From the NCBI GenBank assembly GCA_001643675.2, contig LSRY02000019.1:1240001-1304000 (forward strand): a stretch of DNA of 64,000 nt. Reading direction: 5' to 3'. The notes beneath the pieces are model-generated. The model was not told where the DNA came from and searched no databases. It was given only the letters and a program-made list of their open reading frames with translations. Origin of the DNA: Monocercomonoides exilis PA203. Lineage: Eukaryota > Protista > Preaxostyla. Made by a program: the position numbers and the translations under genes. Shown piece after piece: positions 1 to 49,021 of the stretch (its first letter is position 1; every line of letters begins with the position of its first letter).

Positions 1-3000
1 GAACAGAAAGATAATTCTCCTTTTGTCAATGTCAATTTCTTTTCCGTTTTCACAATTAAAAATTGCAAAATATTGAGCTCTTCCACATCTTTAACTTGTT
101 CAACCAACACTTTCACGTCGATAGTAAATAGCACACGCATTAAACATTCGAACAAACAAATATCTCATTGTTTTGCATTTTGCTGTTCTTCAGATATTGA
201 AATTTCATTTTTGAATTCAGTTTTCACTAACTTTGAGATTTTTGAGAATAATAGCTTTCTTTGTAATGGAATTGGCAGGTCAGTTTATATTGAGAAATGT
301 TTTTTCTGCAACATCACACAAAAATTCAAAACTTTTTCGGACAGTCCATTCAATTCATTTAAAAACAGTGAAGTTTCACATTGCGTTTTTGCTTATTCTT
401 CAAATGTTTTGGAAGGTGGTATAACTTTTGGAATGGAACAAGCTCAAACATTCATATGCTGTAATTCATCTTTTTCCTCTAATTACAGATCTAGCAATCC
501 TTTTGAAAAACAAAATAGTTCACAAGCAACTTCTTCACAGAATTTCAGTTCTTGCGAATGGTCCGACTGCAACGCTGATTGTGGCGGGGCGTTGTATATT
601 CATGATAACTCTTCAGCAACACTGTATGTTTCAAACTCTTCATTTACCAGGTGCAACGCAACAAACTCAAAAGGAGGTGCGATCTTCGCATTTAAAATTG
701 CAGTTTGTTCAGTGATTAATTCATCATTTAAAGAATGTTACTGCGTGGCATCTACCGATTATGGAGGAGCTGGTGTTGAATGCGAAGGACTCTGCGAACA
801 ACCATATGTTGAAAATTGTACTTTTTCTGATGGATGGTCAGGAAATGATGGTGGCGCATTACACATTATGACATGCAATGCACAAACAAAAGATTGCATA
901 ATGGATTGCACATTCATTAACAACAGTTGCCATTCTTTAATAAACAGCGATGGAGGCGAAATTGTTCTTTGGAATTCGATTGATTTGATTGTCATGCATA
1001 ACTGTCTCATCACAAATGGGTATTCAGCAAAATACGGAGGAGGAGTCTCGACTTATGCAAAGAATGACAACTCTGAATTGATTTTCTATTTTTGCTTTTT
1101 TCACAATAACACTGCCCAATTACTCGGACACGATATTTGCATTGATGGTAGTACACGGAATCGAGTTGACACATCATGCAGAACAACTCAAAACAAAGTT
1201 AATAGAGTTGCATTTCGCTCGGGGCAAGATAAAAGTGATTTCCTTTCGTATGAATTTGATCCAATAAGATTTGTTGCTTCTTCAGTTTCACATCCAAATG
1301 CAAAAGATTCATACGGTTGTGGATTATCTGAAGAATACGCATGTGAATCGATTAGCTTTTGTTTAATGCAGCTAATTCCTGAAGTTGTCACAGAAATTAC
1401 AGTTATTGGAGGAATCATTAGAGAATCATATTCAATTGATGTTCATGATAAACATTTCAATTTGAGAGGAACTTTTGAAAGTGATGCTGAAATACAACCT
1501 TCATTTACTAAACAAGAAACATCTCTTTTCAGTGTGTCTTCTGGAACGCTTGATGTGTATCAAATAAGAGTGACTTACAATTCATTAACAAAATATAATC
1601 GAGAATCAAGAATCTGCTGCATTTGTGGCTCAGGATCCATCAACCTCAAAAATATAAACTTGACAACTGATGATTTGCATTCTGCTGACACATTTTTTAA
1701 AACAGAAATGATAACAGTTGTTGAAGGTTCATTAACAATGGTCAATGTTGAATGGATTCGCTTTTTTTCATCAACGTCATTATTTCATTTACCACAAACT
1801 TCTAGTTTTTATTTATCTATGAATCAAACAAATATAAAAAATATCAATCGAATATCTCAAGGAGCAGCGCTTTTCGAATCTCAATTCATAAATGGAAATA
1901 TTGTTCAAACGCAATGTTGCATTGAAAGATGCGGAAGTGAATCTTCTCTTGATGGTGGAGCCGTTTGCCTTTCACTGGGCAGTGAATGCATTCTTGCCAT
2001 TGAAAAAGGATCAATTCAGAATTGCTTTGCATCTTCCACAGTTGGAAAAGGTGGCGGTTGTTTTTTGAACTTAGCAAACATGCAAGCTGAATTTTTTCTA
2101 TCTGTCTCATTCAATAAAAATTCTGCCAGATTGGGAAACGACTTGTTTATCCAATCCTCGAACCTCCGTAAATCAATTTCTAACGAAACACTTCCATTTG
2201 CCTATGTACTGGGGCACAGCTCCTTCGACAGTTTGCAAGGGTTCACTGGGACTGACCATGAGCATTCAATTCCGTTGGTTTTGTTTTTGGAGGATGTTGG
2301 GCAAACAATCCATGTTAGGAGCAATGACGGTGTTGATACTGTGGTGTGTGGATTCTCGGATTATCCGTGCCACTCGCTCAATTACTGTGTGGAGAGGTTG
2401 GACGAAGAAAACGCAAAGGCAGTAGCTGTTCTTGCCTCAGCAACAATTGAAAACGAAACGACATTGCATAATTTGGATTTGAAATCATCAAACACTTCAA
2501 AAGCCGAAATCACTTGCATCAAGTCGCTGCAGGCCTCAACACGAAAAGTGATTGCTTCAACAGGGGATGTGTCCGTCGAATTGATCCACTTTTTGCTTCC
2601 TTCTTCATTTGATACTGAGATCGAAGCCTTGATATTCTTGTCTTCTGAAGGCATGCTGACAATGAAATCTTGCTCATTCGGAATGCAACAAGGCGAGCTT
2701 GGCCAGATGGGTTACTGGTTGTTTCAGATTTGTGGAGGAATACTAAATATCTACAGCTGCACCTTAAGTTCAGACTGCCTTCAGCACGCGCCCATAGCCG
2801 TGTGTGAGAGCGACACGAGCACTCAAGCAACAATCATTTCATTGAATGTGAAGAACACAGATATCGGCAATCATCCTCTTATCCATGCGATTCCATCATC
2901 AGCAGCAAAACTCCTGAATGGTGCCACAACGAGCAGTGGGATCATATCTCTTGTTTTATGTTCTTTTGAAGGGATGGTCCATGCAAATGCAAACAGTGCA

Positions 3001-6000
3001 GTGCTGTTTTCATCCCATATTTCAAGCTGTGTTGAGTGCTCCCATTGGAATGTCACGAATGTCAAAAGCACTCAGAGCATCGAGGGAGGCGCGATGAAAG
3101 TTGTTGTTGAAGCTCAAGGGCAATTTACGATGGAAAACGCAACATTCACAAAATGCTGCGCTGAATGTGAAACGGCTGGAAAAGGAGGAGGCATCTATTT
3201 TGACTGTTCGGCTTCCAATGCATTCTCCTTCCAGCAGATGGCCTTTGATCAGTGCTCTGCAAAACACGGGGAAAACATGTTCTTTCTTTCATCAGACCTA
3301 AATGTTTCCATCACAAACCAGTCTTTAGCGCTTGAAGTGAGTGAGACAACAGATGATACAAATCTGTTCATCGGAAGCGACTCCACAAAAGCAAACTTCG
3401 ATCTGTGCAGATTTCTGATTGGATTTTCTTCTCAAGAAATCTATCTCAGCAAGAACAGCGGCTGGGATGTTCTTCGCTGCGGGAGCAAGAGCGAGCCATG
3501 CGCAACAATGCAGTATGGCCAGAAGCATTTCTGTGCTTCAGATAATCCAGCACAAGCAAACATGAGTATTTTCCTCGTCGTCGATGAAGTTCAAGTGGAT
3601 TGCGAAGTCGACATTTCAAACAATACTCTGACCTCTTCCGATATTGACTCTCACTCTGCTCTGATATTTGCAGCAGCCATTTCACCACAGCCAGGAAAGC
3701 AGCAACATACTGACTCTGTGCTGGCAAACACTGGCGCATGCTCCCTCTTGAGCATCGATATCTGTTGTGATCATGGCTCGGGATGGAGCCAAACATGTTT
3801 GATAAGCACTGCTGCTGGAGCTTTCTCTGCTCAAAGTTGCTTGTTTACCAGCACCTCTGGAACAGCGATTCCTTATTGTGTCGTTGCCTGCTTTTCTGGT
3901 ACTTGTGAATTGTCGCTTTGCTCATTTCAGTCCATCAAATGCGAAGGTCACATCTTCATTGCATCGTGCGGAAGCAGTTCTATCCTATCAAATGTCTCTA
4001 CGGGTAATGTTGAACTCATGGGCAAAAGCATTGTGGAAGTGTTGCCGCAAGTGATGCCACCAGCAATGACACAGGAAATCAACGAAGACATTTGCCCAAC
4101 AGTGCAACTCAAATACTGCACCCTTCACTCGCTTCTTCAAAGCACTCCTTTTGAACCCTCCATCATCAGCTCCTCTGGCAGCCAGCCTTTTAGCGTGTCT
4201 GCCCAAAACACGTCCATAAAGAACTGTGGAAGCAGCCAAAGTGAGAGCGGTGGATGCATAACCATGAGGTTAGATGAAGAAGCATTATTTCGCTGCACTT
4301 TATCCACAATCTCGGAGTGCTTCTGCTCAGCGACTGGAAGGGGAGGTGCAATATTTCTGGATTGCTCATCAATTGCAAGCGATAGCTCGCTGCCTTTCCT
4401 CTTCAAAAATATCACATTCTTGGAGAACAAGGCGTTCAGAGGAAGAGACATATATGTGAGATGCTCCAATGTGGAATCCCAAATAAGGAGCGAGCTATTC
4501 CAGCTCGACTTCAGGCCACCATACAACCAGGAGCTCGCCATTTGGGGATGCACTGCACAAAACTATGCTGACGAGCAAGATCTCTTGCTCCTCGTGATTG
4601 TGTATCAGAGTGAGACAATATTTGCTTCTTCTTCAGCCGACAACACCTCAGATTCACGCCAGTGCGGAGCTATCAATGCGCCCTGCTCTTCCTTGAATGT
4701 TGCATTGTCTCACATCATTCCTTCTGTTTACAGCAACTTGCTCGTTGACGAGATTTCTCTGGTCTCTGGAGAAGCAAGCATCCATGATGTCTCGATCAAG
4801 TCGCTGGAACAGGAAAGAGACAGAGGGACAATCCTCCTGAACAGGAGCATTGAGAGCAGGATGAACAGCCTTCTCACGTGTGCATCCAGAGTGAAAATCG
4901 AATTTCTGAAATTCATGTTCGGAGGCGCGTTTTCTTCTCCATATTCCAGCTTATTATCCCTGACTGATGGCAGCTTGTCAATTACAGATGCACTCTTCTC
5001 CCAAGATGTTTCGAATGATTATCCTGAAAAGAGGTTGAATTGCTCTATCATTCTCGTGGAGAATGGCAGGCTGCTGATCAACGAATGCACTTTTGCTTCC
5101 CTCCATTTTGGTTCTCCATGCGTAGCAGCAAAAGGGGGACAATATTGCTCATTTATGAACTTGAACATTTCTGATGTGAATTCTGATATCTTGTTTGATT
5201 TCCGCAATCTGGTGAACCTCTCCATGCTGCAGGTGCTTATTTCCAGTTGTGAACTTGAACAATCCGCTCTGATCCTTCACAACTGCAAAGATTCCCAGCT
5301 CCAAAAAATTCAAGTCAGAAATGTTGAGAGCAAAACAAGCTTGATTGTGTTTTCCTCAGACGGTTTTGGTGCTTGCTTGAACATCCAGTGCTATCATTCC
5401 GAATTTGATGCCATATCCGTGCTGTCTGGCTCCTTGCTTTCCATCGAATGCCAAGATGCAAATGTCGAGATGAACAATCTGTCATCGACAAAAACAGTGT
5501 TGACAAATGGTTGTGCTGTGAACCTTGTATATGCAAATTCCTCATTAAGTATCAGGCAATCATCGTTTCAAAACATATCCAGAGATTCAATGGGCCCATG
5601 CTGCATGGCTGCTTCACTTTCATCACCATCGCTCGAATTGGAGAACTGCTCATTCAGAAAATGCGTCTCTCCCTCAGATAAAGGGAGCATCTCTGCTTTA
5701 TCTGGCCAATCCAATGCAAGCATAACTTCGTGTGCATTTGATGGAGAAACTGACCTGCAACAACTCAGATCCAATGCAGATTCATTCAAAGATTTGTGCA
5801 AGTGGAATGGCTCCATGATCGATCTTCTCAATTGCTCGGGAGCAATAAAAGACACCACAATCGCCAATTCGTCCAAGGGAGGACTGTCGATCTCTGGCGG
5901 AAACATTTCTATTCAGTTTGGGATGTTTTCTGGCAACAATCCAAACGCTGCTGGATACCCATCCATCAGAAACAACGTTATCTGCTCACACAACGCACTC

Positions 6001-7859
6001 CTGAACATCATCAGCCTCAAGGGAGGAGATGGCTTTCTCCCCAACACCTCAATGTGGATTGCAGGAGACGATTGCACGCTTGCAGGCTTGGCCTCAGAAA
6101 GGCTTTCCCCATTCTTCATCCCACAGCTGCACTCAGTTAACTCACATATCCAAGGCGATGCACTTTCTCTGGATCTCATCGGCTCTTTACTCCTCCCCTG
6201 CCACCTGCTCCTCCAGATTGATTCCATCGACGGCTCCCTCCATCAACTCAAGACATATCCGCTGCAAGCAGAACTCTTTGAAAATGAAACACAAATCCAT
6301 GCAGTCATCCCAGCCTCAATCGTGACTTCGGTACCTGACACCACAGAAGTGGCTGTAAGCATCCTGTTTGGAAGCCTAAATGCTACAGCATCTACAGCAC
6401 AATTTCTTTTGAAGAACAGGAGCGAGATTGCGCAAAAGAAGATGAAAGAATCGTTGAAAAAGGAAAAGAAGGAAAAACACTTTGGCCAATAATAGTTATT
6501 GTAATGGCGATAATTCTTTTAATTGTTCTTGCTGTTTCAATTGTTCTGGCCATTCGGTGGAGAAAGGTGAAGAATGAAGCAGAAGATCTGAGAGAGATTG
6601 TGAATGACAACATCAGAAAGGATCCAAAAGCGTTTGAGATGGTGACGATGGAGATGTCACCAGAGGAGCAGTGGAGGAGAGCAGAGAGGGAGGCTGAGAA
6701 GAAGAACGAAGAGAGGATCAAGAAGAGAGTATATGCGAAAAGCTTGGGGCATTCTGAATCATCAGAGCATTTATTGAGTGAAAGTGGATCAACCGAATAC
6801 ATTCTGGGGAGAGACTCAGACAAGATCCCTCAATGGGCACTGGAGAAGGTTGAAGAAGAGACAAGAAAGCGAACACCTTCTCCATCCATTTCATCCACCT
6901 CAACAACAGACACTTCAGACACAGATTCAACATTTGTTCGAGGGGAGGATCTGTGTCCCACAACATCATCCATGTCGAATCTGGTGGATGCAATGGCATG
7001 TTCGTCTCCCCATGAGAAGCTGATTGTGGACTTGAGGGATTCGCTGTTCATGCTGCTGCATGGAAGAAATGAGAAGAAAGAGATGGCGATTGACACTCTG
7101 CAAGAAAGAGAGATGACAGCTGCCCAAATCCTGTTCTGGGCGGCTAATCTTGCGCTTCACTCCTTTGAAGACGAAGAAAATGAACTCTCTTCGCTGGCCA
7201 ATCTCAGCCCTCACATTGTTCTCTTCTCTGAGCACATGGTCATCTGCATTGCACTTCATTCCGATTGCTCTTCTTCAGACTCAGATTCTTCATCCATCTC
7301 TTCATCAACCGTTGTCACATCAACATCTGATTGCTCCACTGTGAACAGAAATGGGAAAGACTCGCCACCGCCATCATCAGCATTTGAGGATGAGGATGAC
7401 AATAGAAAAGAGTGTATGAGGTGGAAGGCACCTGAGATGCTGATCAACAAAAAGATGGGAGCAACAAAGGAATCAGTTGTGTTCTCGATTGGGATAATGC
7501 TGTGGGAGTGTCTGACGCTGGAGATCCTGTTTGGAGAGTATGAGGCAGAGGTGGCGGGGCAGAAGATTGTGAATGGGGAGAGGCCAAATATCGACAGGAT
7601 CTGCAGTTCGTCTTTTGCCAGCGTGGCAAAGGAATGCTGGTCGCGTGCACCTGGAGACAGACCATCGCTCGAAAGCCTCAAGAGGATCTTCATTCAGCAC
7701 TTCCCTGCAGGCGCTGTCATGCTCACAATGTCTGATGCTGTCGACTTCGAGCCTGACACAGATTATGGATATCGTGGCAGCTTCCTTCCCCAATCTGCCA
7801 CTGCTTCATCAAATGCAACAGCAACAACAACACACAGAAACACACAACACAATTGCTAA
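1..7859 (+). CDS. Giant Cys-rich surface receptor-like protein (beta-helix/Pmp-like ectodomain, TM segment, degenerate kinase C-lobe); 5' end outside the window; -1 frameshift at ~6434-6437 in this sequence
   Basis: Frame 1 is open from base 1 to 6492, with repeated GGAI/GGGI, FxxC/FxxN and CG-x4-PC motifs. ORF 6504-7859 supplies the rest of the TM segment and the RWKAPE..VFSIGIMLWE kinase subdomains VIII-XI. The intact paralogue at 17648-25933 has CAAAAAGAAG where this copy has CAAAAGAAG. Confidence 0.8.
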
Positions 7860-10189
7860 GCAAGCATGCTCCTAATGATTCATCGATTCAGTAACACTCA
7901 TGAGCCTTGCTAACAGGAAAATGCTTATTTTCTGTTGTTCGCTCATAGGATTCAAAATGATACAATTCCCAAGAATGTTTCAAATCAAGTCTTTGAAGAG
8001 ATTGAAACTACAAATTCGCCAAAACATAGCCAGATATATAGTAGTATCAGGTCATTCATCTTTCAGTGCATTCCATTGGGTATTTGAATGATCAGCAGCA
8101 ATCTGCAGGTGCAAATCAACAGCTTTTGTTTTGAAAAATGAAGTTGATAGTTAAAAACGAAGCGCTGTCAGAACACTTCCAATCAAAAAAGAAGGAAAGT
8201 CATGCATATGAATGAAACGATCACAATTATTGTGAAAGAAAAGTCAATTCTGAAACAGGTGAAAAAAACCGTTGAAAATTCTGTTGTTGCAGCCGAGATG
8301 CTGCACGCCAGTTGTTGGAATATCCTCGATTCATTTGTTGTGTTTTGTTGAAAGTTTCATCGCTATTATAATAATTATTATTATTTTCGAATTATTTTTC
8401 TTTTGAGTATTTTTTGATGTTGGGCATCGAGTTGCTTGCTGCTCCATCTCATCAACTTGCTGGACTCTTTGCTCAATTTCCAATTCAGATCAATTTATAA
8501 ATTAAACTTTCTGCAGTATGCCTATCAAATTTGTCTTTATCTCTTGATTCAACAATCCATTTAACCGCTTTGCTTCTTCTTCAAATGGCCGCAATCCACA
8601 ATTTCATTGACCTCTCAAAACTTCCCTTCAATTTTTCTTTTCCCATTATATGTCTTTCTTTTATTTTGGCTTTTTCTTCCAATAAGCAGCCGAAAGCACC
8701 TCCCCTTCTCGATCTCAGTCGTGCCATCGCAAAATCTCTGGCCAATTGCTTTCGAACTGTTAGAAATTAAAATGAAGGCTGCTGTCCAATGAGGCACATA
8801 CGTTGCAAAAGGTTTCCATTTTTATTTATTTTTGAATAAAAAGAAGAGGCGAGGCAGCATTGAAATGATTAAAAAAGAATTTCTATTCTTGGCATGATAA
8901 GTTTCATTTGCTTTTGTTCCTGAGTAACGCTTTCAAATCAAAAATCCAAACTCAAACAAGAAGATACTCCAGCCTGATTTCGGCATTAATATCACCGCTG
9001 GTCTTTCATTTTATTTTTCTCTCTTTCGGAACTCCTCCCATTGGATGTTTTTTTCCCCCTGCTTTCTTCAAGTATTTTTTTTTCCTCTTCAAGATCGAAG
9101 GAGCTGAAATGCTTCTGTATCTTGCACTGGTTTCACAAATAATCCAGGATTGCACGCCCTTGAACTGCTTATCATATTTCCCGCAAAACGCAGCATATTC
9201 TCTCGCGTCATGAATCAGCTTTGAACTACAGCCATCCTTCAAATCATCTTATCCGTTCCAATAAAAAATTATAATCGTGAAGTTCGCTCGCACCTTCTGT
9301 GATTTCTAGCTCATTCAAAAGTTGTATTTCTCTGAAAAATGCAATTTCTGCTGCCATTTTGATCTGAGTTTGGCATTCTAATGGTGATCCATTGACTCTG
9401 ATGTGGCAGATCAAAGCAAAAGAACGACTGCTTCCACACATATTATTTGTGTTGTTTTTGTGCAAATGACAAGATGTTGTAGCATTGGCAACCAATTTGG
9501 TAACTTCGTTAAGTCTTGGCAAAGCCTTCTTCTTACATAAGTTTTTTCTGTTAAAATACAATTTATTCATTCATTCTGCCTTCTACTCCGGTTCGATTGC
9601 CAAATAGAAAAAATTGTGCTTGAAATATGAAAAGGATTCCAGAAAAAGAAAATATTTGACCGCCTTATGAGCACGACAACTCCAAGTTAAAGAACCAAAA
9701 CTGAAAATAATGAATAGTGGGTGACGAAGGAAGATAGAAATGTCAATCATGAAAAAACGAGCAGTGCAGCGTAAATAAAAATCAATGCTGTTCTCTAGGA
9801 CTTTTAAAACCGGGAATGCTTTGGATAAACCACAACGTTCAAAGTTATTTGCTTCAATTGAATCTTCGTCAGATAAGCCACTTATCCATTTGAAATGTGA
9901 TGGAAATGCACAATAAAAATTTAGTAGAAGATGTACTATATTTATAATGTGAAAGCTTGCCTTTTTACAAGAAAATGGACATTTATAATATGATCTCAAT
10001 GCCATTTTAAATTAAATTATATGAAAATTTAATTTTTCCAAAAACAATTTCAATTTTTTGTTACAGAATTGACATTTGAAAAAGAAATACTATTCAAATG
10101 TGCTTTCTGAGATTCTTGAAATTTATAAGCTCAAATCTGGGACGAAATTTTTTGTTTTTGAATTTTGTTCCACTTTTATATTTCTTATA

Positions 10190-12227
10190 GTGTAAGTTAT
10201 TTATCGGGACCTTTTTTTTATGAAAAAAATTTAATAAAATTTAAAATAACAAAAATGATGAATCCAATTTATTTATAACTTTTCTTTTTCATATTTTTCT
10301 ATTAATTTCATTTATTTCTTCCTTTTCATTTTCATGATCATCTTCTTTCACTTCAAATTTTCTCTTTATTTTTTCATTTCAACCAAAGACTCTAACTCAT
10401 TATCTTCTTTTTGCTCTGCTTTTTTCATTTCTTCTGAAAAATTCTTTTCATCATCAACTTTTTTTCTTTTTTAACTTTTTCTTCTTCTTTAATTCCTAAA
10501 TGTTCACTCCAATCACTCAGAAGCTTCTCATCAGTAATCTACTTGCCATAGAAGTTGAATCTATTTGAATGTGATAAAGGTTGATATTCTGATGTTTCTG
10601 GAAGCTTCATGAGAATCGGTCCAGATTCATTATGAAGAACTCCACTCGTTGCGAAGGATATTTTTATGACAGCAAGTGAGAGGGTGGTATGAATTGCTTG
10701 AGGGAGAACATCCACAAGAGATGTTCTTTTCGATGAAGATGTTGATGAAGATGGAGGTTCATATTTTGTTTGCAGTTCTGTTTTGAGAACAGCGAAGACT
10801 CCTCTATCAAGAGGCTGGGCGATATGTGTTCTGTGAGGAATGAAGGTGACGACGTCGATATTTTCTTTTTGAAATTCTCTCCAGATTGTCGGATCTGCGC
10901 GAGAAATGTGTGAGTCGATGAGGAACAAGCAGCGAGAGTTTTCCAGTGACATGCGCTTTCTGCCATCGATAATTCCTTGAAGGAGTGTTGTTAGTGCGTA
11001 CTTTTTGAATTGATTGCAGCCCATCCAACCACTTCCGTTCTGCCAGATATCCAGAGCCTGTGAAAGCAGCGGCTTCATTTCATCAGGAAGTCTCTTGCTA
11101 GGCCATAGAATCACAGAAGGAAGTGCAAATCCATCAGCGGCCACAGCAGCAACTTGAGTAGAATTCGCCATTTTTGGTGGTTCTTTGTGTAGTACTGGAT
11201 TTTCATTTTTAGGATGAACCACACTCAGCTTTGAAGTGGCTGGAACTCTCGTTAATGACTCATCCATATTGAATATTTGTTCTTTTTATCATATATATAT
11301 TCATGTGAATCGTCAAGCAATGAATACCTTGGCTGTAGAATACTTTGGCCCGACACCGAAAGGTTATAATCATCCAAATTTTTTGAGAGCGCTTCCTTTC
11401 AACTTTGGATAGCACTTCACAAATTAATTAGCCGTGAGCATTGAAACGTCAATGTATGGGGCGTATTCGTCGTCTGTATCATTTATCACATTTTCCATCT
11501 TAAATATTTATTAGAATTATTAATTATTTAAGAACAACAAACCAGTTCGCGAACTTTCCGTATAGGCAAACAGCTTCCAGATCTTGATTCAATGATAATT
11601 TCATCCAGTACAATTTGTTCTTTGTCTCCAATAACAAATTGTGGTCTTCCTACTTTTGAAACTAGCCTTTTGTTTCTAAGCGCCCGTTCAGCATTTTTAA
11701 TCCTTTTGTGTGAGAATTCCATGGAGTTTATAGCGTCTGTAATCCTGACAACTCCATCAACCACAATGCGCGCCATCCGTTCCAGCTGATTGTCAATCCT
11801 TCTGTAATCGAAAGATTTCATTGCAGCACGTAATTTCCTTTGTCTAGCAATTCTCTTTTGTTCCACAGCAATTTTCATTTTTTTATTATGGTTGTGATCT
11901 TAAGTCCAATTTATTAATTTATTAATTATAATATTCAATTTTCATTGAAATTAAATTTTTATTTCCATTTGATGCGAATTTTAAAAGGTTTAACACCTCT
12001 TGTTACCCACCTATTTATTTATTTTTTGCAATGGAAGGGATTAACCCCCCCCCCCCCCCTCCCCACCCATTGGAAATAGGCTTCGCATTCAAATGTAATT
12101 ATCCTAATTTTCAGAGTTTGCTTTAATACTGATAATGTTAATAAATAAATAAAAAGTGGGAATTTTAATTTTCTATTTCAAAAATTTGTGCACCGTTAAA
12201 AAAAAGGTTCCGATAAATTACTGACCC
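10190..12227 (-). mobile_element. Decayed pogo/Fot1-like (Tc1/mariner superfamily) DNA transposon, copy 1
   Basis: Imperfect ~30 bp TIRs (GTGTAAGTTATTTATCGGGACCTTTTTTTT / GGGTCAGTAATTTATCGGAACCTTTTTTTT, 4 mismatches), TA on both sides (10188-9, 12228-9) and an internal DDE_1 transposase. Confidence 0.88.
10539..11878 (-). pseudogene. DD35D (DDE_1 family) transposase pseudogene, mirror copy
   Basis: Peptides identical to those of 13622-14961. Confidence 0.88.
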
Positions 12228-12520
12228 TATTTCTCTCTATTTTTCACAATTTTCTTCTTATAATGCAAGAAAATGTTTGACAAAAATGATCTGATAGAGA
12301 AAAAAAGTGGAATAAATTAGAATTCTAATTACAAATTCAGCAAAATTATAATATTCATTTTTTGAAAAAAAATGCAAGGATTGATGCAAATCGTAATAAA
12401 TAATCATGAAAATATTGGAATAATTATTTATGTGCAATGTCAAATACTTTTTCATCTTTAAAATTAAAATTGAATAAGTTGTTTTTGTTTCAATTTTATT
12501 AAAGTTTTGTTTTTTCATTT

Positions 12521-12788
12521 GGGGGAAAATACTATCTTTCAAGCTTTGTATGCACAAAACATGAAAAAATTGTTTCACTTATAACATAATAAAACGTTAT
12601 CAGATTACAAAATAAATTTGATTTTCATATCTGTAAGGAAACATCATTAATATTATAACATTATGTTTCGTGACCTCACATGTATTTCAAAAAATAAGCC
12701 CATTTTCTTCAAATTATTTGATCACAAAAAGATCATCCAAGATGCATAATTTTTCAATGAAAATGCTTGAAGCCAAATATTTTGTCCC
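12521..12788. mobile_element. 268 bp MITE-like element, copy A, 4-bp TSD ATTT
   Basis: Ends GGGGGAAAATA...TATTTTGTCCC form an imperfect TIR extending ~30 bp and including TTCAAGC. ATTT lies at 12517-20 and 12789-92. Colinear with 12866-13133. Confidence 0.75.
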
Positions 12789-12865
12789 ATTTCATCATTA
12801 ATCTATCTATTATGTTATGTATTTCACGTTACTGATGATATTTAACTTGACTTTATTGAATTAAT

Positions 12866-13133
12866 GGGGGAAAATATAAACTTTCAAGCTTTTTATGCAC
12901 AAAGCATGAAATAATTGATTAACTTATAACATTTTTAAACGAACACAGATTTCAAAAACAATTTGATTTTCATATCTGTTAACAAACATCATTGATATAA
13001 TAACATTAAGTTTTGTGACATCAAACGTATTTTAAAAAACAAACACATTTATTTCAAAATTTTTGATCACAAAAAGCTTATCAAAATTGCATAATTCTTC
13101 AATGAAAATGCCTGAAGTCAAATATTTTGTCCC
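12866..13133. mobile_element. 268 bp MITE-like element, copy B, 4-bp TSD TAAT
   Basis: Same length and termini as copy A but diverged internally; TAAT at 12862-65 and 13134-37. Confidence 0.75.
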
Positions 13134-13421
13134 TAATAGGTTAATAATTTTTCATTAATAAAAAAGGTTCAAATTTTTTCCACTTTTTTTCTCTATCAGA
13201 TCATTTTTGTCAAACATTTTCTTGCATTATAAGAAGAAAATTGTGAAAAATAGAGAGAAATAGGGTCAGTAATTTATCGGAACCTTTTTTTTAACGGTGC
13301 ACAAATTTTTGAAATAGAAAATTAAAATTCCCACTTTTTATTTATTTATTAACATTATCAGTATTAAAGCAAACTCTGAAAATTAGGATAATTACATTTG
13401 AATGCGAAGCCTATTTCCAAT

Positions 13422-13455
13422 GGGTGGGGAGGGGGGGGGGGGGGGGGGGGGGGGG
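13422..13455 (+). repeat. G-rich tract (GGGTGGGGA then G25), G-quadruplex-capable; the mirror copy at 12045-12068 has C15
   Basis: Seen directly; lies in the 5' non-coding part of the transposon. Confidence 0.85.
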
Positions 13456-13621
13456 TTAATCCCTTCCATTGCAAAAAATAAATAAATAGGTGGGTAACAA
13501 GAGGTGTTAAACCTTTTAAAATTCGCATCAAATGGAAATAAAAATTTAATTTCAATGAAAATTGAATATTATAATTAATAAATTAATAAATTGGACTTAA
13601 GATCACAACCATAATAAAAAA

Positions 13622-14961
13622 ATGAAAATTGCTGTGGAACAAAAGAGAATTGCTAGACAAAGGAAATTACGTGCTGCAATGAAATCTTTCGATTACAGAA
13701 GGATTGACAATCAGCTGGAACGGATGGCGCGCATTGTGGTTGATGGAGTTGTCAGGATTACAGACGCTATAAACTCCATGGAATTCTCACACAAAAGGAT
13801 TAAAAATGCTGAACGGGCGCTTAGAAACAAAAGGCTAGTTTCAAAAGTAGGAAGACCACAATTTGTTATTGGAGACAAAGAACAAATTGTACTGGATGAA
13901 ATTATCATTGAATCAAGATCTGGAAGCTGTTTGCCTATACGGAAAGTTCGCGAACTGGTTTGTTGTTCTTAAATAATTAATAATTCTAATAAATATTTAA
14001 GATGGAAAATGTGATAAATGATACAGACGACGAATACGCCCCATACATTGACGTTTCAATGCTCACGGCTAATTAATTTGTGAAGTGCTATCCAAAGTTG
14101 AAAGGAAGCGCTCTCAAAAAATTTGGATGATTATAACCTTTCGGTGTCGGGCCAAAGTATTCTACAGCCAAGGTATTCATTGCTTGACGATTCACATGAA
14201 TATATATATGATAAAAAGAACAAATATTCAATATGGATGAGTCATTAACGAGAGTTCCAGCCACTTCAAAGCTGAGTGTGGTTCATCCTAAAAATGAAAA
14301 TCCAGTACTACACAAAGAACCACCAAAAATGGCGAATTCTACTCAAGTTGCTGCTGTGGCCGCTGATGGATTTGCACTTCCTTCTGTGATTCTATGGCCT
14401 AGCAAGAGACTTCCTGATGAAATGAAGCCGCTGCTTTCACAGGCTCTGGATATCTGGCAGAACGGAAGTGGTTGGATGGGCTGCAATCAATTCAAAAAGT
14501 ACGCACTAACAACACTCCTTCAAGGAATTATCGATGGCAGAAAGCGCATGTCACTGGAAAACTCTCGCTGCTTGTTCCTCATCGACTCACACATTTCTCG
14601 CGCAGATCCGACAATCTGGAGAGAATTTCAAAAAGAAAATATCGACGTCGTCACCTTCATTCCTCACAGAACACATATCGCCCAGCCTCTTGATAGAGGA
14701 GTCTTCGCTGTTCTCAAAACAGAACTGCAAACAAAATATGAACCTCCATCTTCATCAACATCTTCATCGAAAAGAACATCTCTTGTGGATGTTCTCCCTC
14801 AAGCAATTCATACCACCCTCTCACTTGCTGTCATAAAAATATCCTTCGCAACGAGTGGAGTTCTTCATAATGAATCTGGACCGATTCTCATGAAGCTTCC
14901 AGAAACATCAGAATATCAACCTTTATCACATTCAAATAGATTCAACTTCTATGGCAAGTAG
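13622..14961 (+). pseudogene. DD35D (DDE_1 family) transposase pseudogene
   Basis: Catalytic motifs IFNMDES, FLIDSH and QPLDRGVF, with 35 residues between the 2nd and 3rd Asp. The basic ORF 13622-13972 is the probable DNA-binding part. The linker has in-frame stops and frameshifts, and coding-like sequence continues past the TAG ending at 14961. Confidence 0.88.
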
Positions 14962-17647
14962 ATTACTGATGAGAAGCTTCTGAGTGATTGGAGTGAACAT
15001 TTAGGAATTAAAGAAGAAGAAAAAGTTAAAAAAGAAAAAAAAGTTGATGATGAAAAGAATTTTTCAGAAGAAATGAAAAAAAGCAGAGCAAAAAGAAGAT
15101 AATGAGTTAGAGTCTTTGGTTGAAATGAAAAAAATAAAGAGAAAATTTGAAGTGAAAGAAGATGATCATGAAAATGAAAAGGAAGAAATAAATGAAATTA
15201 ATAGAAAAATATGAAAAAGAAAAGTTATAAATAAATTGGATTCATCATTTTTGTTATTTTAAATTTTATTAAATTTTTTTTCATAAAAAAAAAAGGTCCC
15301 GATAAATAACTTACACTATAAGAAATATAAAAGTGGAACAAAATTCAAAAAACAAAAAATTTCGTCCCAGATTTGAGCTTATAAATTTCAAGAATCTCAG
15401 AAAGCACATTTGAATAGTATTTCTTTTTCAAATGTCAATTCTGTAACAAAAAATTGAAATTGTTTTTGGAAAAATTAAATTTTCATATAATTTAATTTAA
15501 AATGGCATTGAGATCATATTATAAATGTCCATTTTCTTGTAAAAAGGCAAGCTTTCACATTATAAATATAGTACATCTTCTACTAAATTTTTATTGTGCA
15601 TTTCCATCACATTTCAAATGGATAAGTGGCTTATCTGACGAAGATTCAATTGAAGCAAATAACTTTGAACGTTGTGGTTTATCCAAAGCATTCCCGGTTT
15701 TAAAAGTCCTAGAGAACAGCATTGATTTTTATTTACGCTGCACTGCTCGTTTTTTCATGATTGACATTTCTATCTTCCTTCGTCACCCACTATTCATTAT
15801 TTTCAGTTTTGGTTCTTTAACTTGGAGTTGTCGTGCTCATAAGGCGGTCAAATATTTTCTTTTTCTGGAATCCTTTTCATATTTCAAGCACAATTTTTTC
15901 TATTTGGCAATCGAACCGGAGTAGAAGGCAGAATGAATGAATAAATTGTATTTTAACAGAAAAAACTTATGTAAGAAGAAGGCTTTGCCAAGACTTAACG
16001 AAGTTACCAAATTGGTTGCCAATGCTACAACATCTTGTCATTTGCACAAAAACAACACAAATAATATGTGTGGAAGCAGTCGTTCTTTTGCTTTGATCTG
16101 CCACATCAGAGTCAATGGATCACCATTAGAATGCCAAACTCAGATCAAAATGGCAGCAGAAATTGCATTTTTCAGAGAAATACAACTTTTGAATGAGCTA
16201 GAAATCACAGAAGGTGCGAGCGAACTTCACGATTATAATTTTTTATTGGAACGGATAAGATGATTTGAAGGATGGCTGTAGTTCAAAGCTGATTCATGAC
16301 GCGAGAGAATATGCTGCGTTTTGCGGGAAATATGATAAGCAGTTCAAGGGCGTGCAATCCTGGATTATTTGTGAAACCAGTGCAAGATACAGAAGCATTT
16401 CAGCTCCTTCGATCTTGAAGAGGAAAAAAAAATACTTGAAGAAAGCAGGGGGAAAAAAACATCCAATGGGAGGAGTTCCGAAAGAGAGAAAAATAAAATG
16501 AAAGACCAGCGGTGATATTAATGCCGAAATCAGGCTGGAGTATCTTCTTGTTTGAGTTTGGATTTTTGATTTGAAAGCGTTACTCAGGAACAAAAGCAAA
16601 TGAAACTTATCATGCCAAGAATAGAAATTCTTTTTTAATCATTTCAATGCTGCCTCGCCTCTTCTTTTTATTCAAAAATAAATAAAAATGGAAACCTTTT
16701 GCAACGTATGTGCCTCATTGGACAGCAGCCTTCATTTTAATTTCTAACAGTTCGAAAGCAATTGGCCAGAGATTTTGCGATGGCACGACTGAGATCGAGA
16801 AGGGGAGGTGCTTTCGGCTGCTTATTGGAAGAAAAAGCCAAAATAAAAGAAAGACATATAATGGGAAAAGAAAAATTGAAGGGAAGTTTTGAGAGGTCAA
16901 TGAAATTGTGGATTGCGGCCATTTGAAGAAGAAGCAAAGCGGTTAAATGGATTGTTGAATCAAGAGATAAAGACAAATTTGATAGGCATACTGCAGAAAG
17001 TTTAATTTATAAATTGATCTGAATTGGAAATTGAGCAAAGAGTCCAGCAAGTTGATGAGATGGAGCAGCAAGCAACTCGATGCCCAACATCAAAAAATAC
17101 TCAAAAGAAAAATAATTCGAAAATAATAATAATTATTATAATAGCGATGAAACTTTCAACAAAACACAACAAATGAATCGAGGATATTCCAACAACTGGC
17201 GTGCAGCATCTCGGCTGCAACAACAGAATTTTCAACGGTTTTTTTCACCTGTTTCAGAATTGACTTTTCTTTCACAATAATTGTGATCGTTTCATTCATA
17301 TGCATGACTTTCCTTCTTTTTTGATTGGAAGTGTTCTGACAGCGCTTCGTTTTTAACTATCAACTTCATTTTTCAAAACAAAAGCTGTTGATTTGCACCT
17401 GCAGATTGCTGCTGATCATTCAAATACCCAATGGAATGCACTGAAAGATGAATGACCTGATACTACTATATATCTGGCTATGTTTTGGCGAATTTGTAGT
17501 TTCAATCTCTTCAAAGACTTGATTTGAAACATTCTTGGGAATTGTATCATTTTGAATCCTATGAGCGAACAACAGAAAATAAGCATTTTCCTGTTAGCAA
17601 GGCTCATGAGTGTTACTGAATCGATGAATCATTAGGAGCATGCTTGC

Positions 17648-20600
17648 TTAGCAATTGTGTTGTGTGTTTCTGTGTGTTGTTGTTGCTGTTGCATTTGATG
17701 AAGCAGTGGCAGATTGGGGAAGGAAGCTGCCACGATATCCATAATCTGTGTCAGGCTCGAAGTCGACAGCATCAGACATTGTGAGCATGACAGCGCCTGC
17801 AGGGAAGTGCTGAATGAAGATCCTCTTGAGGCTTTCGAGCGATGGTCTGTCTCCAGGTGCACGCGACCAGCATTCCTTTGCCACGCTGGCAAAAGACGAA
17901 CTGCAGATCCTGTCGATATTTGGCCTCTCCCCATTCACAATCTTCTGCCCCGCCACCTCTGCCTCATACTCTCCAAACAGGATCTCCAGCGTCAGACACT
18001 CCCACAGCATTATCCCAATCGAGAACACAACTGATTCCTTTGTTGCTCCCATCTTTTTGTTGATCAGCATCTCAGGTGCCTTCCACCTCATACACTCTTT
18101 TCTATTGTCATCCTCATCCTCAAATGCTGATGATGGCGGTGGCGAGTCTTTCCCATTTCTGTTCACAGTGGAGCAATCAGATGTTGATGTGACAACGGTT
18201 GATGAAGAGATGGATGAAGAATCTGAGTCTGAAGAAGAGCAATCGGAATGAAGTGCAATGCAGATGACCATGTGCTCAGAGAAGAGAACAATGTGAGGGC
18301 TGAGATTGGCCAGCGAAGAGAGTTCATTTTCTTCGTCTTCAAAGGAGTGAAGCGCAAGATTAGCCGCCCAGAACAGGATTTGGGCAGCTGTCATCTCTCT
18401 TTCTTGCAGAGTGTCAATCGCCATCTCTTTCTTCTCATTTCTTCCATGCAGCAGCATGAACAGCGAATCCCTCAAGTCCACAATCAGCTTCTCATGGGGA
18501 GACGAACATGCCATTGCATCCACCAGATTCGACATGGATGATGTTGTGGGACACAGATCCTCCCCTCGAACAAATGTTGAATCTGTGTCTGAAGTGTCTG
18601 TTGTTGAGGTGGATGAAATGGATGGAGAAGGTGTTCGCTTTCTTGTCTCTTCTTCAACCTTCTCCAGTGCCCATTGAGGGATCTTGTCTGAGTCTCTCCC
18701 CAGAATGTATTCGGTTGATCCACTTTCACTCAATAAATGCTCTGATGATTCAGAATGCCCCAAGCTTTTCGCATATACTCTCTTCTTGATCCTCTCTTCG
18801 TTCTTCTTCTCAGCCTCCCTCTCTGCTCTCCTCCACTGCTCCTCTGGTGACATCTCCATCGTCACCATCTCAAACGCTTTTGGATCCTTTCTGATGTTGT
18901 CATTCACAATCTCTCTCAGATCTTCTGCTTCATTCTTCACCTTTCTCCACCGAATGGCCAGAACAATTGAAACAGCAAGAACAATTAAAAGAATTATCGC
19001 CATTACAATAACTATTATTGGCCAAAGTGTTTTTCCTTCTTTTCCTTTTTCAACGATTCTTTCATCTTCTTTTTGCGCAATCTCGCTCCTGTTCTTCAAA
19101 AGAAATTGTGCTGTAGATGCTGTAGCATTTAGGCTTCCAAACAGGATGCTTACAGCCACTTCTGTGGTGTCAGGTACCGAAGTCACGATTGAGGCTGGGA
19201 TGACTGCATGGATTTGTGTTTCATTTTCAAAGAGTTCTGCTTGCAGCGGATATGTCTTGAGTTGATGGAGGGAGCCGTCGATGGAATCAATCTGGAGGAG
19301 CAGGTGGCAGGGGAGGAGTAAAGAGCCGATGAGATCCAGAGAAAGTGCATCGCCTTGGATATGTGAGTTAACTGAGTGCAGCTGTGGGATGAAGAATGGG
19401 GAAAGCCTTTCTGAGGCCAAGCCTGCAAGCGTGCAATCGTCTCCTGCAATCCACATTGAGGTGTTGGGGAGAAAGCCATCTCCTCCCTTGAGGCTGATGA
19501 TGTTCAGGAGTGCGTTGTGTGAGCAGATAACGTTGTTTCTGATGGATGGGTATCCAGCAGCGTTTGGATTGTTGCCAGAAAACATCCCAAACTGAATAGA
19601 AATGTTTCCGCCAGAGATCGACAGTCCTCCCTTGGACGAATTGGCGATTGTGGTGTCTTTTATTGCTCCCGAGCAATTGAGAAGATCGATCATGGAGCCA
19701 TTCCACTTGCACAAATCTTTGAATGAATCTGCATTGGATCTGAGTTGTTGCAGGTCAGTTTCTCCATCAAATGCACACGAAGTTATGCTTGCATTGGATT
19801 GGCCAGATAAAGCAGAGATGCTCCCTTTATCTGAGGGAGAGACGCATTTTCTGAATGAGCAGTTCTCCAATTCGAGCGATGGTGATGAAAGTGAAGCAGC
19901 CATGCAGCATGGGCCCATTGAATCTCTGGATATGTTTTGAAACGATGATTGCCTGATACTTAATGAGGAATTTGCATATACAAGGTTCACAGCACAACCA
20001 TTTGTCAACACTGTTTTTGTCGATGACAGATTGTTCATCTCGACATTTGCATCTTGGCATTCGATGGAAAGCAAGGAGCCAGACAGCACGGATATGGCAT
20101 CAAATTCGGAATGATAGCACTGGATGTTCAAGCAAGCACCAAAACCGTCTGAGGAAAACACAATCAAGCTTGTTTTGCTCTCAACATTTCTGACTTGAAT
20201 TTTTTGGAGCTGGGAATCTTTGCAGTTGTGAAGGATCAGAGCGGATTGTTCAAGTTCACAACTGGAAATAAGCACCTGCAGCATGGAGAGGTTCACCAGA
20301 TTGCGGAAATCAAACAAGATATCAGAATTCACATCAGAAATGTTCAAGTTCATAAATGAGCAATATTGTCCCCCTTTTGCTGCTACGCATGGAGAACCAA
20401 AATGGAGGGAAGCAAAAGTGCATTCGTTGATCAGCAGCCTGCCATTCTCCACGAGAATGATAGAGCAATTCAACCTCTTTTCAGGATAATCATTCGAAAC
20501 ATCTTGGGAGAAGAGTGCATCTGTAATTGACAAGCTGCCATCAGTCAGGGATAATAAGCTGGAATATGGAGAAGAAAACGCGCCTCCGAACATGAATTTC

Positions 20601-23600
20601 AGAAATTCGATTTTCACTCTGGATGCACACGTGAGAAGGCTGTTCATCCTGCTCTCAATGCTCCTGTTCAGGAGGATTGTCCCTCTGTCTCTTTCCTGTT
20701 CCAGCGACTTGATCGAGACATCATGGATGCTTGCTTCTCCAGAGACCAGAGAAATCTCGTCAACGAGCAAGTTGCTGTAAACAGAAGGAATGATGTGAGA
20801 CAATGCAACATTCAAGGAAGAGCAGGGCGCATTGATAGCTCCGCACTGGCGTGAATCTGAGGTGTTGTCGGCTGAAGAAGAAGCAAATATTGTCTCACTC
20901 TGATACACAATCACGAGGAGCAAGAGATCTTGCTCGTCAGCATAGTTTTGTGCAGTGCATCCCCAAATGGCGAGCTCCTGGTTGTATGGTGGCCTGAAGT
21001 CGAGCTGGAATAGCTCGCTCCTTATTTGGGATTCCACATTGGAGCATCTCACATATATGTCTCTTCCTCTGAACGCCTTGTTCTCCAAGAATGTGATATT
21101 TTTGAAGAGGAAAGGCAGCGAGCTATCGCTTGCAATTGATGAGCAATCCAGAAATATTGCACCTCCCCTTCCAGTCGCTGAGCAGAAGCACTCCGAGATT
21201 GTGGATAAAGTGCAGCGAAATAATGCTTCTTCATCTAACCTCATGGTTATGCATCCACCGCTCTCACTTTGGCTGCTTCCACAGTTCTTTATGGACGTGT
21301 TTTGGGCAGACACGCTAAAAGGCTGGCTGCCAGAGGAGCTGATGATGGAGGGTTCAAAAGGAGTGCTTTGAAGAAGCGAGTGAAGGGTGCAGTATTTGAG
21401 TTGCACTGTTGGGCAAATGTCTTCGTTGATTTCCTGTGTCATTGCTGGTGGCATCACTTGCGGCAACACTTCCACAATGCTTTTGCCCATGAGTTCAACA
21501 TTACCCGTAGAGACATTTGATAGGATAGAACTGCTTCCGCACGATGCAATGAAGATGTGACCTTCGCATTTGATGGACTGAAATGAGCAAAGCGACAATT
21601 CACAAGTACCAGAAAAGCAGGCAACGACACAATAAGGAATCGCTGTTCCAGAGGTGCTGGTAAACAAGCAACTTTGAGCAGAGAAAGCTCCAGCAGCAGT
21701 GCTTATCAAACATGTTTGGCTCCATCCCGAGCCATGATCACAACAGATATCGATGCTCAAGAGGGAGCATGCGCCAGTGTTTGCCAGCACAGAGTCAGTA
21801 TGTTGCTGCTTTCCTGGCTGTGGTGAAATGGCTGCTGCAAATATCAGAGCAGAGTGAGAGTCAATATCGGAAGAGGTCAGAGTATTGTTTGAAATGTCGA
21901 CTTCGCAATCCACTTGAACTTCATCGACGACGAGGAAAATACTCATGTTTGCTTGTGCTGGATTATCTGAAGCACAGAAATGCTTCTGGCCATACTGCAT
22001 TGTTGCGCATGGCTCGCTCTTGCTCCCGCAGCGAAGAACATCCCAGCCGCTGTTCTTGCTGAGATAGATTTCTTGAGAAGAAAATCCAATCAGAAATCTG
22101 CACAGATCGAAGTTTGCTTTTGTGGAGTCGCTTCCGATGAACAGATTTGTATCATCTGTTGTCTCACTCACTTCAAGCGCTAAAGACTGGTTTGTGATGG
22201 AAACATTTAGGTCTGATGAAAGAAAGAACATGTTTTCCCCGTGTTTTGCAGAGCACTGATCAAAGGCCATCTGCTGGAAGGAGAATGCATTGGAAGCCGA
22301 ACAGTCAAAATAGATGCCTCCTCCTTTTCCAGCCGTTTCACATTCAGCGCAGCATTTTGTGAATGTTGCGTTTTCCATCGTAAATTGCCCTTGAGCTTCA
22401 ACAACAACTTTCATCGCGCCTCCCTCGATGCTCTGAGTGCTTTTGACATTCGTGACATTCCAATGGGAGCACTCAACACAGCTTGAAATATGGGATGAAA
22501 ACAGCACTGCACTGTTTGCATTTGCATGGACCATCCCTTCAAAAGAACATAAAACAAGAGATATGATCCCACTGCTCGTTGTGGCACCATTCAGGAGTTT
22601 TGCTGCTGATGATGGAATCGCATGGATAAGAGGATGATTGCCGATATCTGTGTTCTTCACATTCAATGAAATGATTGTTGCTTGAGTGCTCGTGTCGCTC
22701 TCACACACGGCTATGGGCGCGTGCTGAAGGCAGTCTGAACTTAAGGTGCAGCTGTAGATATTTAGTATTCCTCCACAAATCTGAAACAACCAGTAACCCA
22801 TCTGGCCAAGCTCGCCTTGTTGCATTCCGAATGAGCAAGATTTCATTGTCAGCATGCCTTCAGAAGACAAGAATATCAAGGCTTCGATCTCAGTATCAAA
22901 TGAAGAAGGAAGCAAAAAGTGGATCAATTCGACGGACACATCCCCTGTTGAAGCAATCACTTTTCGTGTTGAGGCCTGCAGCGACTTGATGCAAGTGATT
23001 TCGGCTTTTGAAGTGTTTGATGATTTCAAATCCAAATTATGCAATGTCGTTTCGTTTTCAATTGTTGCTGAGGCAAGAACAGCTACTGCCTTTGCGTTTT
23101 CTTCGTCCAACCTCTCCACACAGTAATTGAGCGAGTGGCACGGATAATCCGAGAATCCACACACCACAGTATCAACACCGTCATTGCTCCTAACATGGAT
23201 TGTTTGCCCAACATCCTCCAAAAACAAAACCAACGGAATTGAATGCTCATGGTCAGTCCCAGTGAACCCTTGCAAACTGTCGAAGGAGCTGTGCCCCAGT
23301 ACATAGGCAAATGGAAGTGTTTCGTTAGAAATTGATTCATGGAGATTTGGTGATTGGACAAACAAGTCGTTTCCGTGTTTCGCTTTGTTAGGCTTTTCCA
23401 CAGAAAAAGAAGGTGTCTCAATTGTTAATGAAGCATCTGAATGCCCAAGATCCAGAAAGATTCCTCCTCCATATCCCACATGGGAACCAAAAGGTGCTTC
23501 ACATTCTTCAAAGGAGCATGATGAAATGGTTGCAGAGCATGTATTTTGAAGTGAGAGGAACAATGCACCTCCTCCATTTCCATCTGCAACCACCCTGCAA

Positions 23601-48000: not shown

Positions 48001-49021
48001 TCTCTTCCGTGCATATGGCGAGGAATCAAAAGCGACTGCGAGGGAGTCAATGGAATAGGCGTCATCATCCCATCTCGATGCGACTGTAGCAAGGGAGACT
48101 GTGAATACCTTGAAGCAGACAGAGAGGGAGAAGGGCTTGATGACAAAGAGAGTGATGGAGATGGTGAGAAAGAGGGAGGTGTGACAGAAAGCGAACGTCT
48201 TGTTGGCTGTGGTGTCTGCCCAGAACGAATCAGCATGTTTGCCCTTTTCTTCTTCAGCATTTGCGTTGCACGTGCTTTTGAGACTGTGGCTGTGTCACGT
48301 ATTCCTGATGGCTCAATGCAAATCGAGTTCTCCAAATAGCCGCGTGAAAGTGTACGCAATTGCACGTTGTCCGGATTGATTTTCATCCTTTCTCGGACTG
48401 TTTGAATAGCTTCTTGTGTTGTTGGAACACCAGTCTGCTCCAGATAATATACTGCAAATTCTGTCTTTGCTTGATCGAGAAGTTGATCATTCATTGCTAA
48501 GCTTGTGTCAGTTTCTGGTTTTAGAGGAATTGTTAATTTCCACATCCTTTTTTGTCTTGGGGTGTCTTCTTCTGATTCAGATGAATCTTCGGTATGAACT
48601 TTGTGGGACAATGTAGATTTATGTTTTTTAGCTTTGACATTCGCTTTCCCTCCTTTTGACCCAAGAACTGTTTACAGAAAATATCAAATTTCATTGAGAA
48701 AAAGTCATCTCATTTTCAAATTAATAACTATAAACCCTTCAGCTTCGCTGCGATTATTCTTGAAGTGTTTTCCTTCATGCTTTCTCTGTAACTTGCTGTT
48801 ACATGACCCTTTAATGTGAATTATTTGTTGAATAAGATATTAATGGAAAGAGCAACGATTAACGAATAAAATTCCTTAATGCAAACCATTAGCCTTCTTG
48901 ATTTTTCTTGAAGTTCATCCTCAGTATATTTTCTTTTTTGAACATATTTCATAATCTCAGATTTTTTTGGTTTTGGATGTCCGTGAAGAAGTCCACTTGC
49001 CTCGTCTTGGTCATCGTCCAT
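42087..49021 (-). CDS. Large Ser/Pro-rich hypothetical protein (~2.2-2.3k aa, two short 5' introns)
   Basis: A 2174-codon ORF can be joined in frame to the ATG at 49021 through two GTTT..AG introns (…SRRLM|GHVTAS…AAKLK|VLGSKGG…). Some hydrophobic globular blocks, but no family recognised. Confidence 0.75.

Follow-up and report, generated by a model that had tools for sequence, protein, structure and literature searches.

Two genes for giant receptor-like pseudokinases in the protist Monocercomonoides exilis PA203, here called gene A and gene B, lie tail to tail and are joined by a near-perfect DNA palindrome of 21.2 kb. They were analysed in a stretch of 64,000 nucleotides (nt) of contig LSRY02000019.1 (C13:1,240,001-1,304,000; genome 82.3 Mb, 101 contigs), referred to as the window, whose positions are used below (Table 1). 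The two genes share their C-terminal body, or chassis (stalk, transmembrane segment and pseudokinase), and differ in their N-terminal ectodomains. An earlier reading of this DNA (the original prediction) had taken them for products of a surface-receptor diversification system, in which recombination at a conserved motif places variable distal ectodomains on a common chassis. We favour, with moderate confidence, a different explanation, namely segmental duplication and ectopic gene conversion of the ordinary kind, within a family that is patched together throughout from conversion tracts, not a motif-targeted switching device.

A palindrome with identical arms

When the two arms were aligned with each other, identity was found to begin abruptly at 2171/23337 and to be perfect from there inward. 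It passes both stop codons by 4,453 nt and ends at 12312/13178. In the assembly as it stands the arms differ by 0 substitutions over 10,142 nt, a value behind which polishing with multi-mapped reads could mask a small true divergence. Inverted arms of more than 99.9% identity thus flank a non-duplicated, asymmetric spacer of 865 nt, and the chassis of gene A is 100% identical to that of gene B. Each arm contains the last ~1,895 receptor codons, ~2 kb of 3' flank, a 2,044-bp transposon and ~80 nt more. What was copied is a piece of chromosome and not a gene cassette.

The margins of the palindrome have diverged, with 2 mismatches in 10 nt on the inside and 7 in 37 nt on the outside (2134-2170 against 23374-23338), the outer margin being explicable also as old homology between paralogues. 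Beyond these 37 nt nucleotide identity drops to 24-47% in a MAFFT alignment, and no nucleotide match between A and B was found there by blastn. At the protein level the N-termini are at best 26% identical, over 292 amino acids (aa) and in partly non-collinear order. Both N-termini are joined to the shared body in frame. The sharp start of identity, the homologous but diverged margin, the distant relationship of the N-termini and the in-frame fusions had all been anticipated correctly by the original prediction.

Support for the assembly

The genome was assembled from nanopore reads with Canu and corrected with Nanopolish and ten rounds of Pilon (PMC8767320). With arms (10.1 kb) exceeding the read N50 of 8.9 kb (PMC8767320), polishing with multi-mapping reads, and arms that differ only in homopolymer lengths, all of them shorter in the same arm, one may ask whether Canu or Pilon created the palindrome, or its perfect identity, from fold-back or misplaced reads, the truth being a single copy or two clearly different copies. 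We consider such an artefact very improbable. The read evidence consisted of Logan contigs of four runs over 1500-7400, in which rare variants are dropped. A contig from 2016 DNA spans junction A without mismatch (1500-2200, depth 6.5), and a 2024 RNA-library contig covers 1867-2200; the junction is therefore real, and the latter contig hints that gene A may be transcribed. The contigs end exactly k-1 bases past the edge at 2171 (30 nt past 2170 for the DNA contig, k=31), as expected if in the k=31 graph the path private to A runs into sequence that another locus also has. Inside the arm the mismatch-free contigs reach a depth of 12-20, corresponding to about two copies and to ~2x the depth of the A-private contig. 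Moreover, the contig is 1.6 Mb long and the window lies well within it, at 1.24 Mb, flanked on either side by unique sequence, and the asymmetric spacer is short enough to be crossed by ordinary reads. Junction B is the normal arrangement of the family.

The only differences between the arms are eight homopolymer runs (18 nt in total), with the shorter run in the left arm at all eight. They are located at window positions 6434, 10155, 10212, 10223, 10369, 10420, 10459 and 12045; one is a C-run, whose left copy is 10 nt shorter. Because of the 1-nt frameshift at 6434-6437, gene A was assembled as two open reading frames (ORFs), 73-6492 and 6504-7859. Since eight homopolymer indels without a substitution are the signature of nanopore consensus error, we regard this frameshift as quite likely to be such an error. 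Contigs carrying A5 at this place were present in four of the four runs, and one RNA run had A5 at its full depth. Where a repeat is perfect, short reads are placed on the correct copy, so that the other one stays unpolished; arms identical over 10 kb escape short-read polishing, and the one-sided differences are probably unpolished nanopore error in one copy. Mutagenesis by break-induced replication was also considered as the source of the eight one-sided deletions, and was rejected as far less probable than consensus error, because there are too many indels per 10 kb without substitution and because RNA-library contigs carry A5.

The public model of gene A, P0021, begins at an internal methionine, by which the signal peptide and ~400 aa are lost, and bridges the frameshift at 6434 by an invented intron, skipping ~36 residues.

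Direction of copying

Four paralogues, P1-P4 (C13:1.37 Mb, C13:1.03 Mb, C13:0.67 Mb and C25:0.56 Mb), are 85-99% identical to gene B from end to end, N-terminus included, and their 5' flanks match as well. The chassis that comes closest to that of B after gene A is 95% identical and carries a B-type N-terminus. The private part of gene A (789 codons, with a signal-peptide-like start) is unrelated to the N-termini of gene B and P1-P4. Its closest relatives are the Q genes (C58/C47/C1), at only 67-68% nucleotide and 42-55% aa identity. The Q genes form a separate clade of ~3,050-aa proteins, whose body cannot be aligned to B until the transmembrane segment and kinase tail. Since gene B is collinear with P1-P4 and the N-terminus of gene A is foreign, gene A is a chimera, and these comparisons of sequence show that gene B is the native copy and that copying went from B to A.

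The transposon in the arms permits relative dating. It is absent from the equivalent site in P1-P4, as the homology of their flanks ends at 9883-10138, and the copying of the arm therefore postdates the insertion of the transposon. This element is of the pogo/DDE_1 type, with more than 30 genomic copies at 83-89% identity and degenerate transposase ORFs. A match between the P3 flank and part of the spacer (12371-12505), which would have made the left arm the copy 'in situ', was not reproduced by blastn, and this possibility was dropped.

In genes of the B superfamily (gene A, gene B, P5 and P6) the GC content at third codon positions (GC3) is ~0.22-0.35 over the N-terminal 2.6 kb and steps up to ~0.40-0.58 in the chassis, and in the Q genes (locus Q1) it stays at ~0.3 until the transmembrane segment and kinase tail and then rises. 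GC-biased gene conversion, stronger where paralogous partners are more numerous, would fit this step.

The junction at the module-end motif

Paralogues were searched with a 3-kb query centred on the B junction. Through the junction motif 26 paralogues (74-92% identity) run uninterrupted, and only two loci begin there, within 4 nt of each other: gene A (query position 1464) and a degenerate pseudogene on contig C39 (query position 1460). Upstream of its join the C39 pseudogene has 84 A-like residues with an in-frame stop (52% aa and 75% nucleotide identity to A). Its chassis, interrupted by at least three frameshifts, belongs to the B superfamily (84% identity to the P5/C2 subfamily, 77% to B), and all B-superfamily matches to it start at one point. 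It lacks the N-terminus and the kinase tail. This second join shows that the combination of an A-like N-terminus with a B-like body at the motif predates the present identity of the arms.

The sequence around the margin points in the same direction. In the 45 nt around 2134-2170 gene A has 10 mismatches to B versus 18-19 to Q, and the preceding 87 nt are most similar to C39 (71% identity), then to Q (61%) and least to B (30%). There are thus two nested edges, an old limit of homology at 2134 and a recent limit of identity at 2171. As the margin of A was already B-type, the recent tract stopped inside existing homology and did not create the join; most likely, the identity edge marks the limit of the older homology.

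Alternatively, the event that built the palindrome could also have made gene A in one step, an inverted copy of the body and flank of B being linked by a template switch at the motif to a Q-like N-terminus, with loss of the Q body. Several observations would suit this scenario. The Q genes, which are closest to the N-terminus of A, have a different and longer body, the motif is the sole nucleotide island common to all clades (15-nt exact match at 2134-2148), and the 16-nt mini-palindrome at the inner edge of the left arm is of a kind suitable for fold-back priming. This mini-palindrome may have served for fold-back priming or may have arisen by chance in AT-rich DNA. However, the 37-nt margin of gene A is B-type, not Q-type, the old C39 pseudogene already has the identical join, and with only 67-68% identity of A to any Q gene there is no recent donor. 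A one-step origin is therefore unlikely.

Conversion tracts in the family

If the motif were a repeatedly used junction that brings variable distal ectodomains onto a common chassis, breakpoints should cluster there and trees from the two sides should disagree, as the original prediction proposed. The main subfamilies came out the same, apart from a few local conflicts, whether trees were built from the module preceding the motif or from either of two blocks following it. Ends of conversion tracts were surveyed by a conservation-corrected scan of 19 annotated or translated family proteins, which yielded 44 pair-specific tracts of high identity; between them these have 39 distinct ends. The three inter-module zones held three of the 39 ends, where a share of 9.5% would be expected (p = 0.73), which is no enrichment. 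A strict search for tracts of at least 250 nt with at most one mismatch between paralogues found almost none.

Individual tracts illustrate the scatter. In P5 (L013, C58:1.36 Mb) ~550-750 nt, from gene nt 5477 to ~6030-6250, are 98-100% identical to B, whereas the rest of P5 is 73-82% identical; the left edge of the tract is sharp and lies in the middle of a beta-helix (aa 1827). This tract is an ectopic conversion between different contigs. A conversion block in P4 spans aa ~1340-1560.

The notion of a surface-receptor diversification system can draw on the two joins at one point with two chassis subtypes (A with B, C39 with a P5-like body), on one module-sized swap bounded near two motifs, and on the three combinations of N-terminus and chassis that occur in the family. 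What speaks against it is that there is a single recent instance, that the 26 paralogues are collinear through the motif, that subfamilies are concordant on its two sides and tract ends not enriched at it, that the copied unit takes in 4.4 kb of non-genic DNA and a transposon, and that nothing hints at silent cassettes or an expression site. Such a system is improbable. We give as little credence to a related version, in which the motif and the ~40 conserved residues after it are a preferred in-frame crossover for the repeated exchange of whole distal ectodomains or single beta-helix modules, with palindromes as the vehicle; if it were true, the family would be a modular, recombination-driven system of surface diversification. 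Of the predicted crossover at a conserved inter-module motif one part stands: the join lies at a module end in the structural model, gene A is a true chimera of N- and C-terminal parts, and C39 has the same join. The other part does not, as the identity covers a 10-kb arm with non-coding flank and transposon and is no gene-targeted exchange of cassettes.

Three other convergent pairs of family genes gave mirror-symmetric, equal-scoring matches: C48:240537-242783(+)/245675-247921(-), C10:1444007-1445340(+)/1447086-1448419(-) and C40:718274-719432(+)/723159-724318(-). They may be further palindromes.

Proposed order of events

For segmental duplication with ectopic conversion, the order of events and the molecular mechanism would be as follows. 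An A-type gene, with a foreign distal ectodomain joined at the module-end motif to a B-superfamily chassis, would have lain tail to tail with gene B. A recent homology-directed intrachromosomal event would then have copied the body of B over that of A, either by gene conversion between the arms of an inverted repeat already present or by fold-back or break-induced copying. The same event would also have copied the 2 kb of 3' flank, the later-inserted transposon and a further ~370 nt. Copying would have stopped 37 nt inside the limit of A/B homology, and for this reason the edge would be at the motif and in frame. The palindrome may be either a young duplication or an older one kept identical by conversion. 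In effect, the inverted segmental copy would have overwritten 5.7 kb of gene A with its neighbour's body, making the stalk, transmembrane segment and pseudokinase of the two genes identical while their distal ectodomains stayed different.

Some observations weigh against this explanation. That all eight indels are shorter in the left arm has a two-sided chance of ~0.8% if errors are symmetric, and is unexplained; one-sided indels could mean that the arms have different histories. We infer the prior A-type chassis of gene A from one degenerate pseudogene and a 45-nt margin, and the inverted adjacency of the arms rests on the published Canu assembly. The survey of tract ends was made on proteins, in pairs that are not independent, and is blind inside conserved zones, so that there may be a mild preference of crossovers for the motif zones. 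Between P0017 and P0010 there is a module-sized replacement (aa ~866/907 to ~1231/1262) with both ends next to motifs, and conserved inter-module stretches may be somewhat favoured as crossover sites.

Architecture of the receptors

The protein encoded by gene B starts with a signal peptide, continues with beta-helix modules in tandem and two small beta domains, and ends, after a transmembrane segment, with the remnant of a kinase C-lobe. Only this C-lobe was recognised by Pfam (PF07714, PK_Tyr_Ser-Thr; 44.6-48.3 bits against a cut-off of 23.1), and the match is confined to profile positions 160-256 of 258. The cytoplasmic tails of 12 family members, 300-450 aa in length, contain none of the motifs GxGxxG, VAIK lysine, HRD and DFG, while APE is retained. 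The catalytic motifs being absent, the tails are pseudokinases, in agreement with the original prediction.

The ectodomain gave no Pfam match at E <= 5 and no sequence match in PDB, and the Chlam_PMP repeat (PF02415) was not matched at E <= 5 by any ectodomain piece. Strings resembling GGA(I/L/V) are visible in it by eye. AlphaFold2 models built on alignments of paralogues (mean confidence, pLDDT, 82.9 and 81.5) consist of tandem right-handed beta-helices with all-beta rungs, and two small beta domains lie between these and the membrane. Among the Foldseek matches two-helix PL6 alginate lyases, GH55 glucanases and phage tailspikes ranked at the top (E down to 5e-6, probability ~1), with TM-scores that are low because the model holds two domains. 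The ectodomain is thus predicted to have the right-handed parallel beta-helix (pectin-lyase-like) fold. In the model the motif (B aa 854-866) is the last beta-strand of helix 1, and the identity edge (aa 866/867) falls in a short helix between this strand and a linker modelled with low confidence. As the motif ends a beta-helix module in the model, 'inter-module motif' is an accurate description.

The receptor has 32 database relatives, every one of them a protein of M. exilis. The papers on this organism mention these genes only as the largest family, with 332 'tyrosine kinases', 320 of them TKL (PMC6759080). Beta-helix modules on a dead kinase are not described in the genome papers (PMC8767320, PMC6759080), and literature searches found no prior description of the receptor architecture or of the palindrome.

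Other features of the window

The coordinates are collected in Table 1. The ~270-nt dispersed repeat of the spacer is also found inserted within other transposon copies, e.g. at C1:1575526-1576126. The genes nearby have eukaryotic housekeeping functions; among them are SPT6, a CLP1/Grc3-like gene and Sey1. A 2174-aa ORF on the minus strand (42087-48611) had no Pfam match.

Table 1. Features of the palindrome and of the related pseudogene (window positions unless a contig is given)
Feature	Position	Strand	Remarks
Gene A, chimeric giant receptor-like pseudokinase	1-7859	+	starts 198 nt before the window; public model P0021
Private N-terminal ectodomain of gene A	1-2133	+	unalignable to gene B
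Outer margin of palindrome	2134-2170	+	conserved module-end motif (GNDLF..); mirror 23338-23374
Left palindrome arm	2171-12312		10,142 nt; no substitution against right arm
A4 run (A5 in gene B)	6434-6437	+	frameshift 50 nt before transmembrane segment
Transmembrane segment of gene A	6486-6554	+	mirrored from gene B 18953-19021
Kinase-like C-lobe remnant of gene A	7392-7685	+	mirror in gene B 17822-18115
3' flank common to arm and P1-P4	7860-9897		90-93% identity; mirror 15610-17647
pogo/DDE_1-type transposon, left arm	10187-12230	-	34-bp terminal inverted repeats
Perfect 16-nt mini-palindrome	12315-12330		centred on GAATTC; inner edge of left arm
Spacer	12313-13177		865 nt, AT-rich (23% GC), asymmetric
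~270-nt dispersed repeat	12520-12788, 12865-13133		two direct copies in spacer
Right palindrome arm	13178-23337		10,160 nt
Transposon, mirror copy in right arm	13260-15319	+	
Gene B, intact receptor-like pseudokinase	17648-25933	-	2761 aa; collinear with P1-P4 over full length
Degenerate pseudogene (L019)	C39:8773-13600		9 kb from contig end

Comparison with known systems

The palindrome is a clean, datable example of evolution in the largest gene family of an amitochondriate model protist, and no new mechanism is revealed by it. Its relation to known systems depends on which of its aspects is compared.

In the major surface glycoprotein (MSG) genes of Pneumocystis a single expression site provides the constant part, and each cassette begins with the conserved recombination junction element (CRJE). 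The likeness is to the original prediction only, which likewise had a short conserved in-frame element joining a variable to a constant part. In contrast, at least 26 M. exilis paralogues are complete genes through the motif, and there is one recent join. Programmed exchange of cassettes, of the MSG-CRJE, VSG or vlsE type, implies many recent exchanges from one junction element, whereas here one recent join (A) and one old join (C39) stand beside 26 collinear paralogues.

Ectopic gene conversion and mosaicism are known from several surface protein families of protists, such as the homology blocks of Plasmodium var genes, the mosaic variant surface glycoproteins (VSGs) of Trypanosoma and the variant-specific surface proteins (VSPs) of Giardia. 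The M. exilis receptors resemble them in being a large lineage-specific family with ectodomains patchworked from tracts exchanged among dispersed paralogues. They differ in that nothing was seen that would point to mutually exclusive expression, to archives of silent cassettes or to a dedicated junction element, and in that the tract ends are scattered.

With regard to protein architecture, the TMK family of Entamoeba histolytica consists of type-I membrane proteins, in which the ectodomain is large and variable and the cytoplasmic part has a kinase-like domain. TKL genes have expanded in Trichomonas vaginalis and M. exilis (PMC6759080). The receptors described here share the type-I topology, the large variable ectodomain and the cytoplasmic kinase-like domain. 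Unlike in those families, their ectodomain is predicted to be a string of right-handed beta-helices without Pfam match, and of the kinase only the C-lobe is present, without catalytic motifs.

The closest parallel in DNA structure is provided by the human and primate Y palindromes P1-P8, whose arms are reportedly kept identical by arm-to-arm gene conversion. Common to both are a large inverted repeat, a short unique spacer, near-identical gene-bearing arms and unrelated sequence just outside. The M. exilis palindrome differs in its host, a protist, in the size of its arms (10 kb) and in that the arm edge lies inside a gene, so that the two genes share only their 3' two-thirds; the identity of its arms fits a young duplication as well as long-term concerted evolution.

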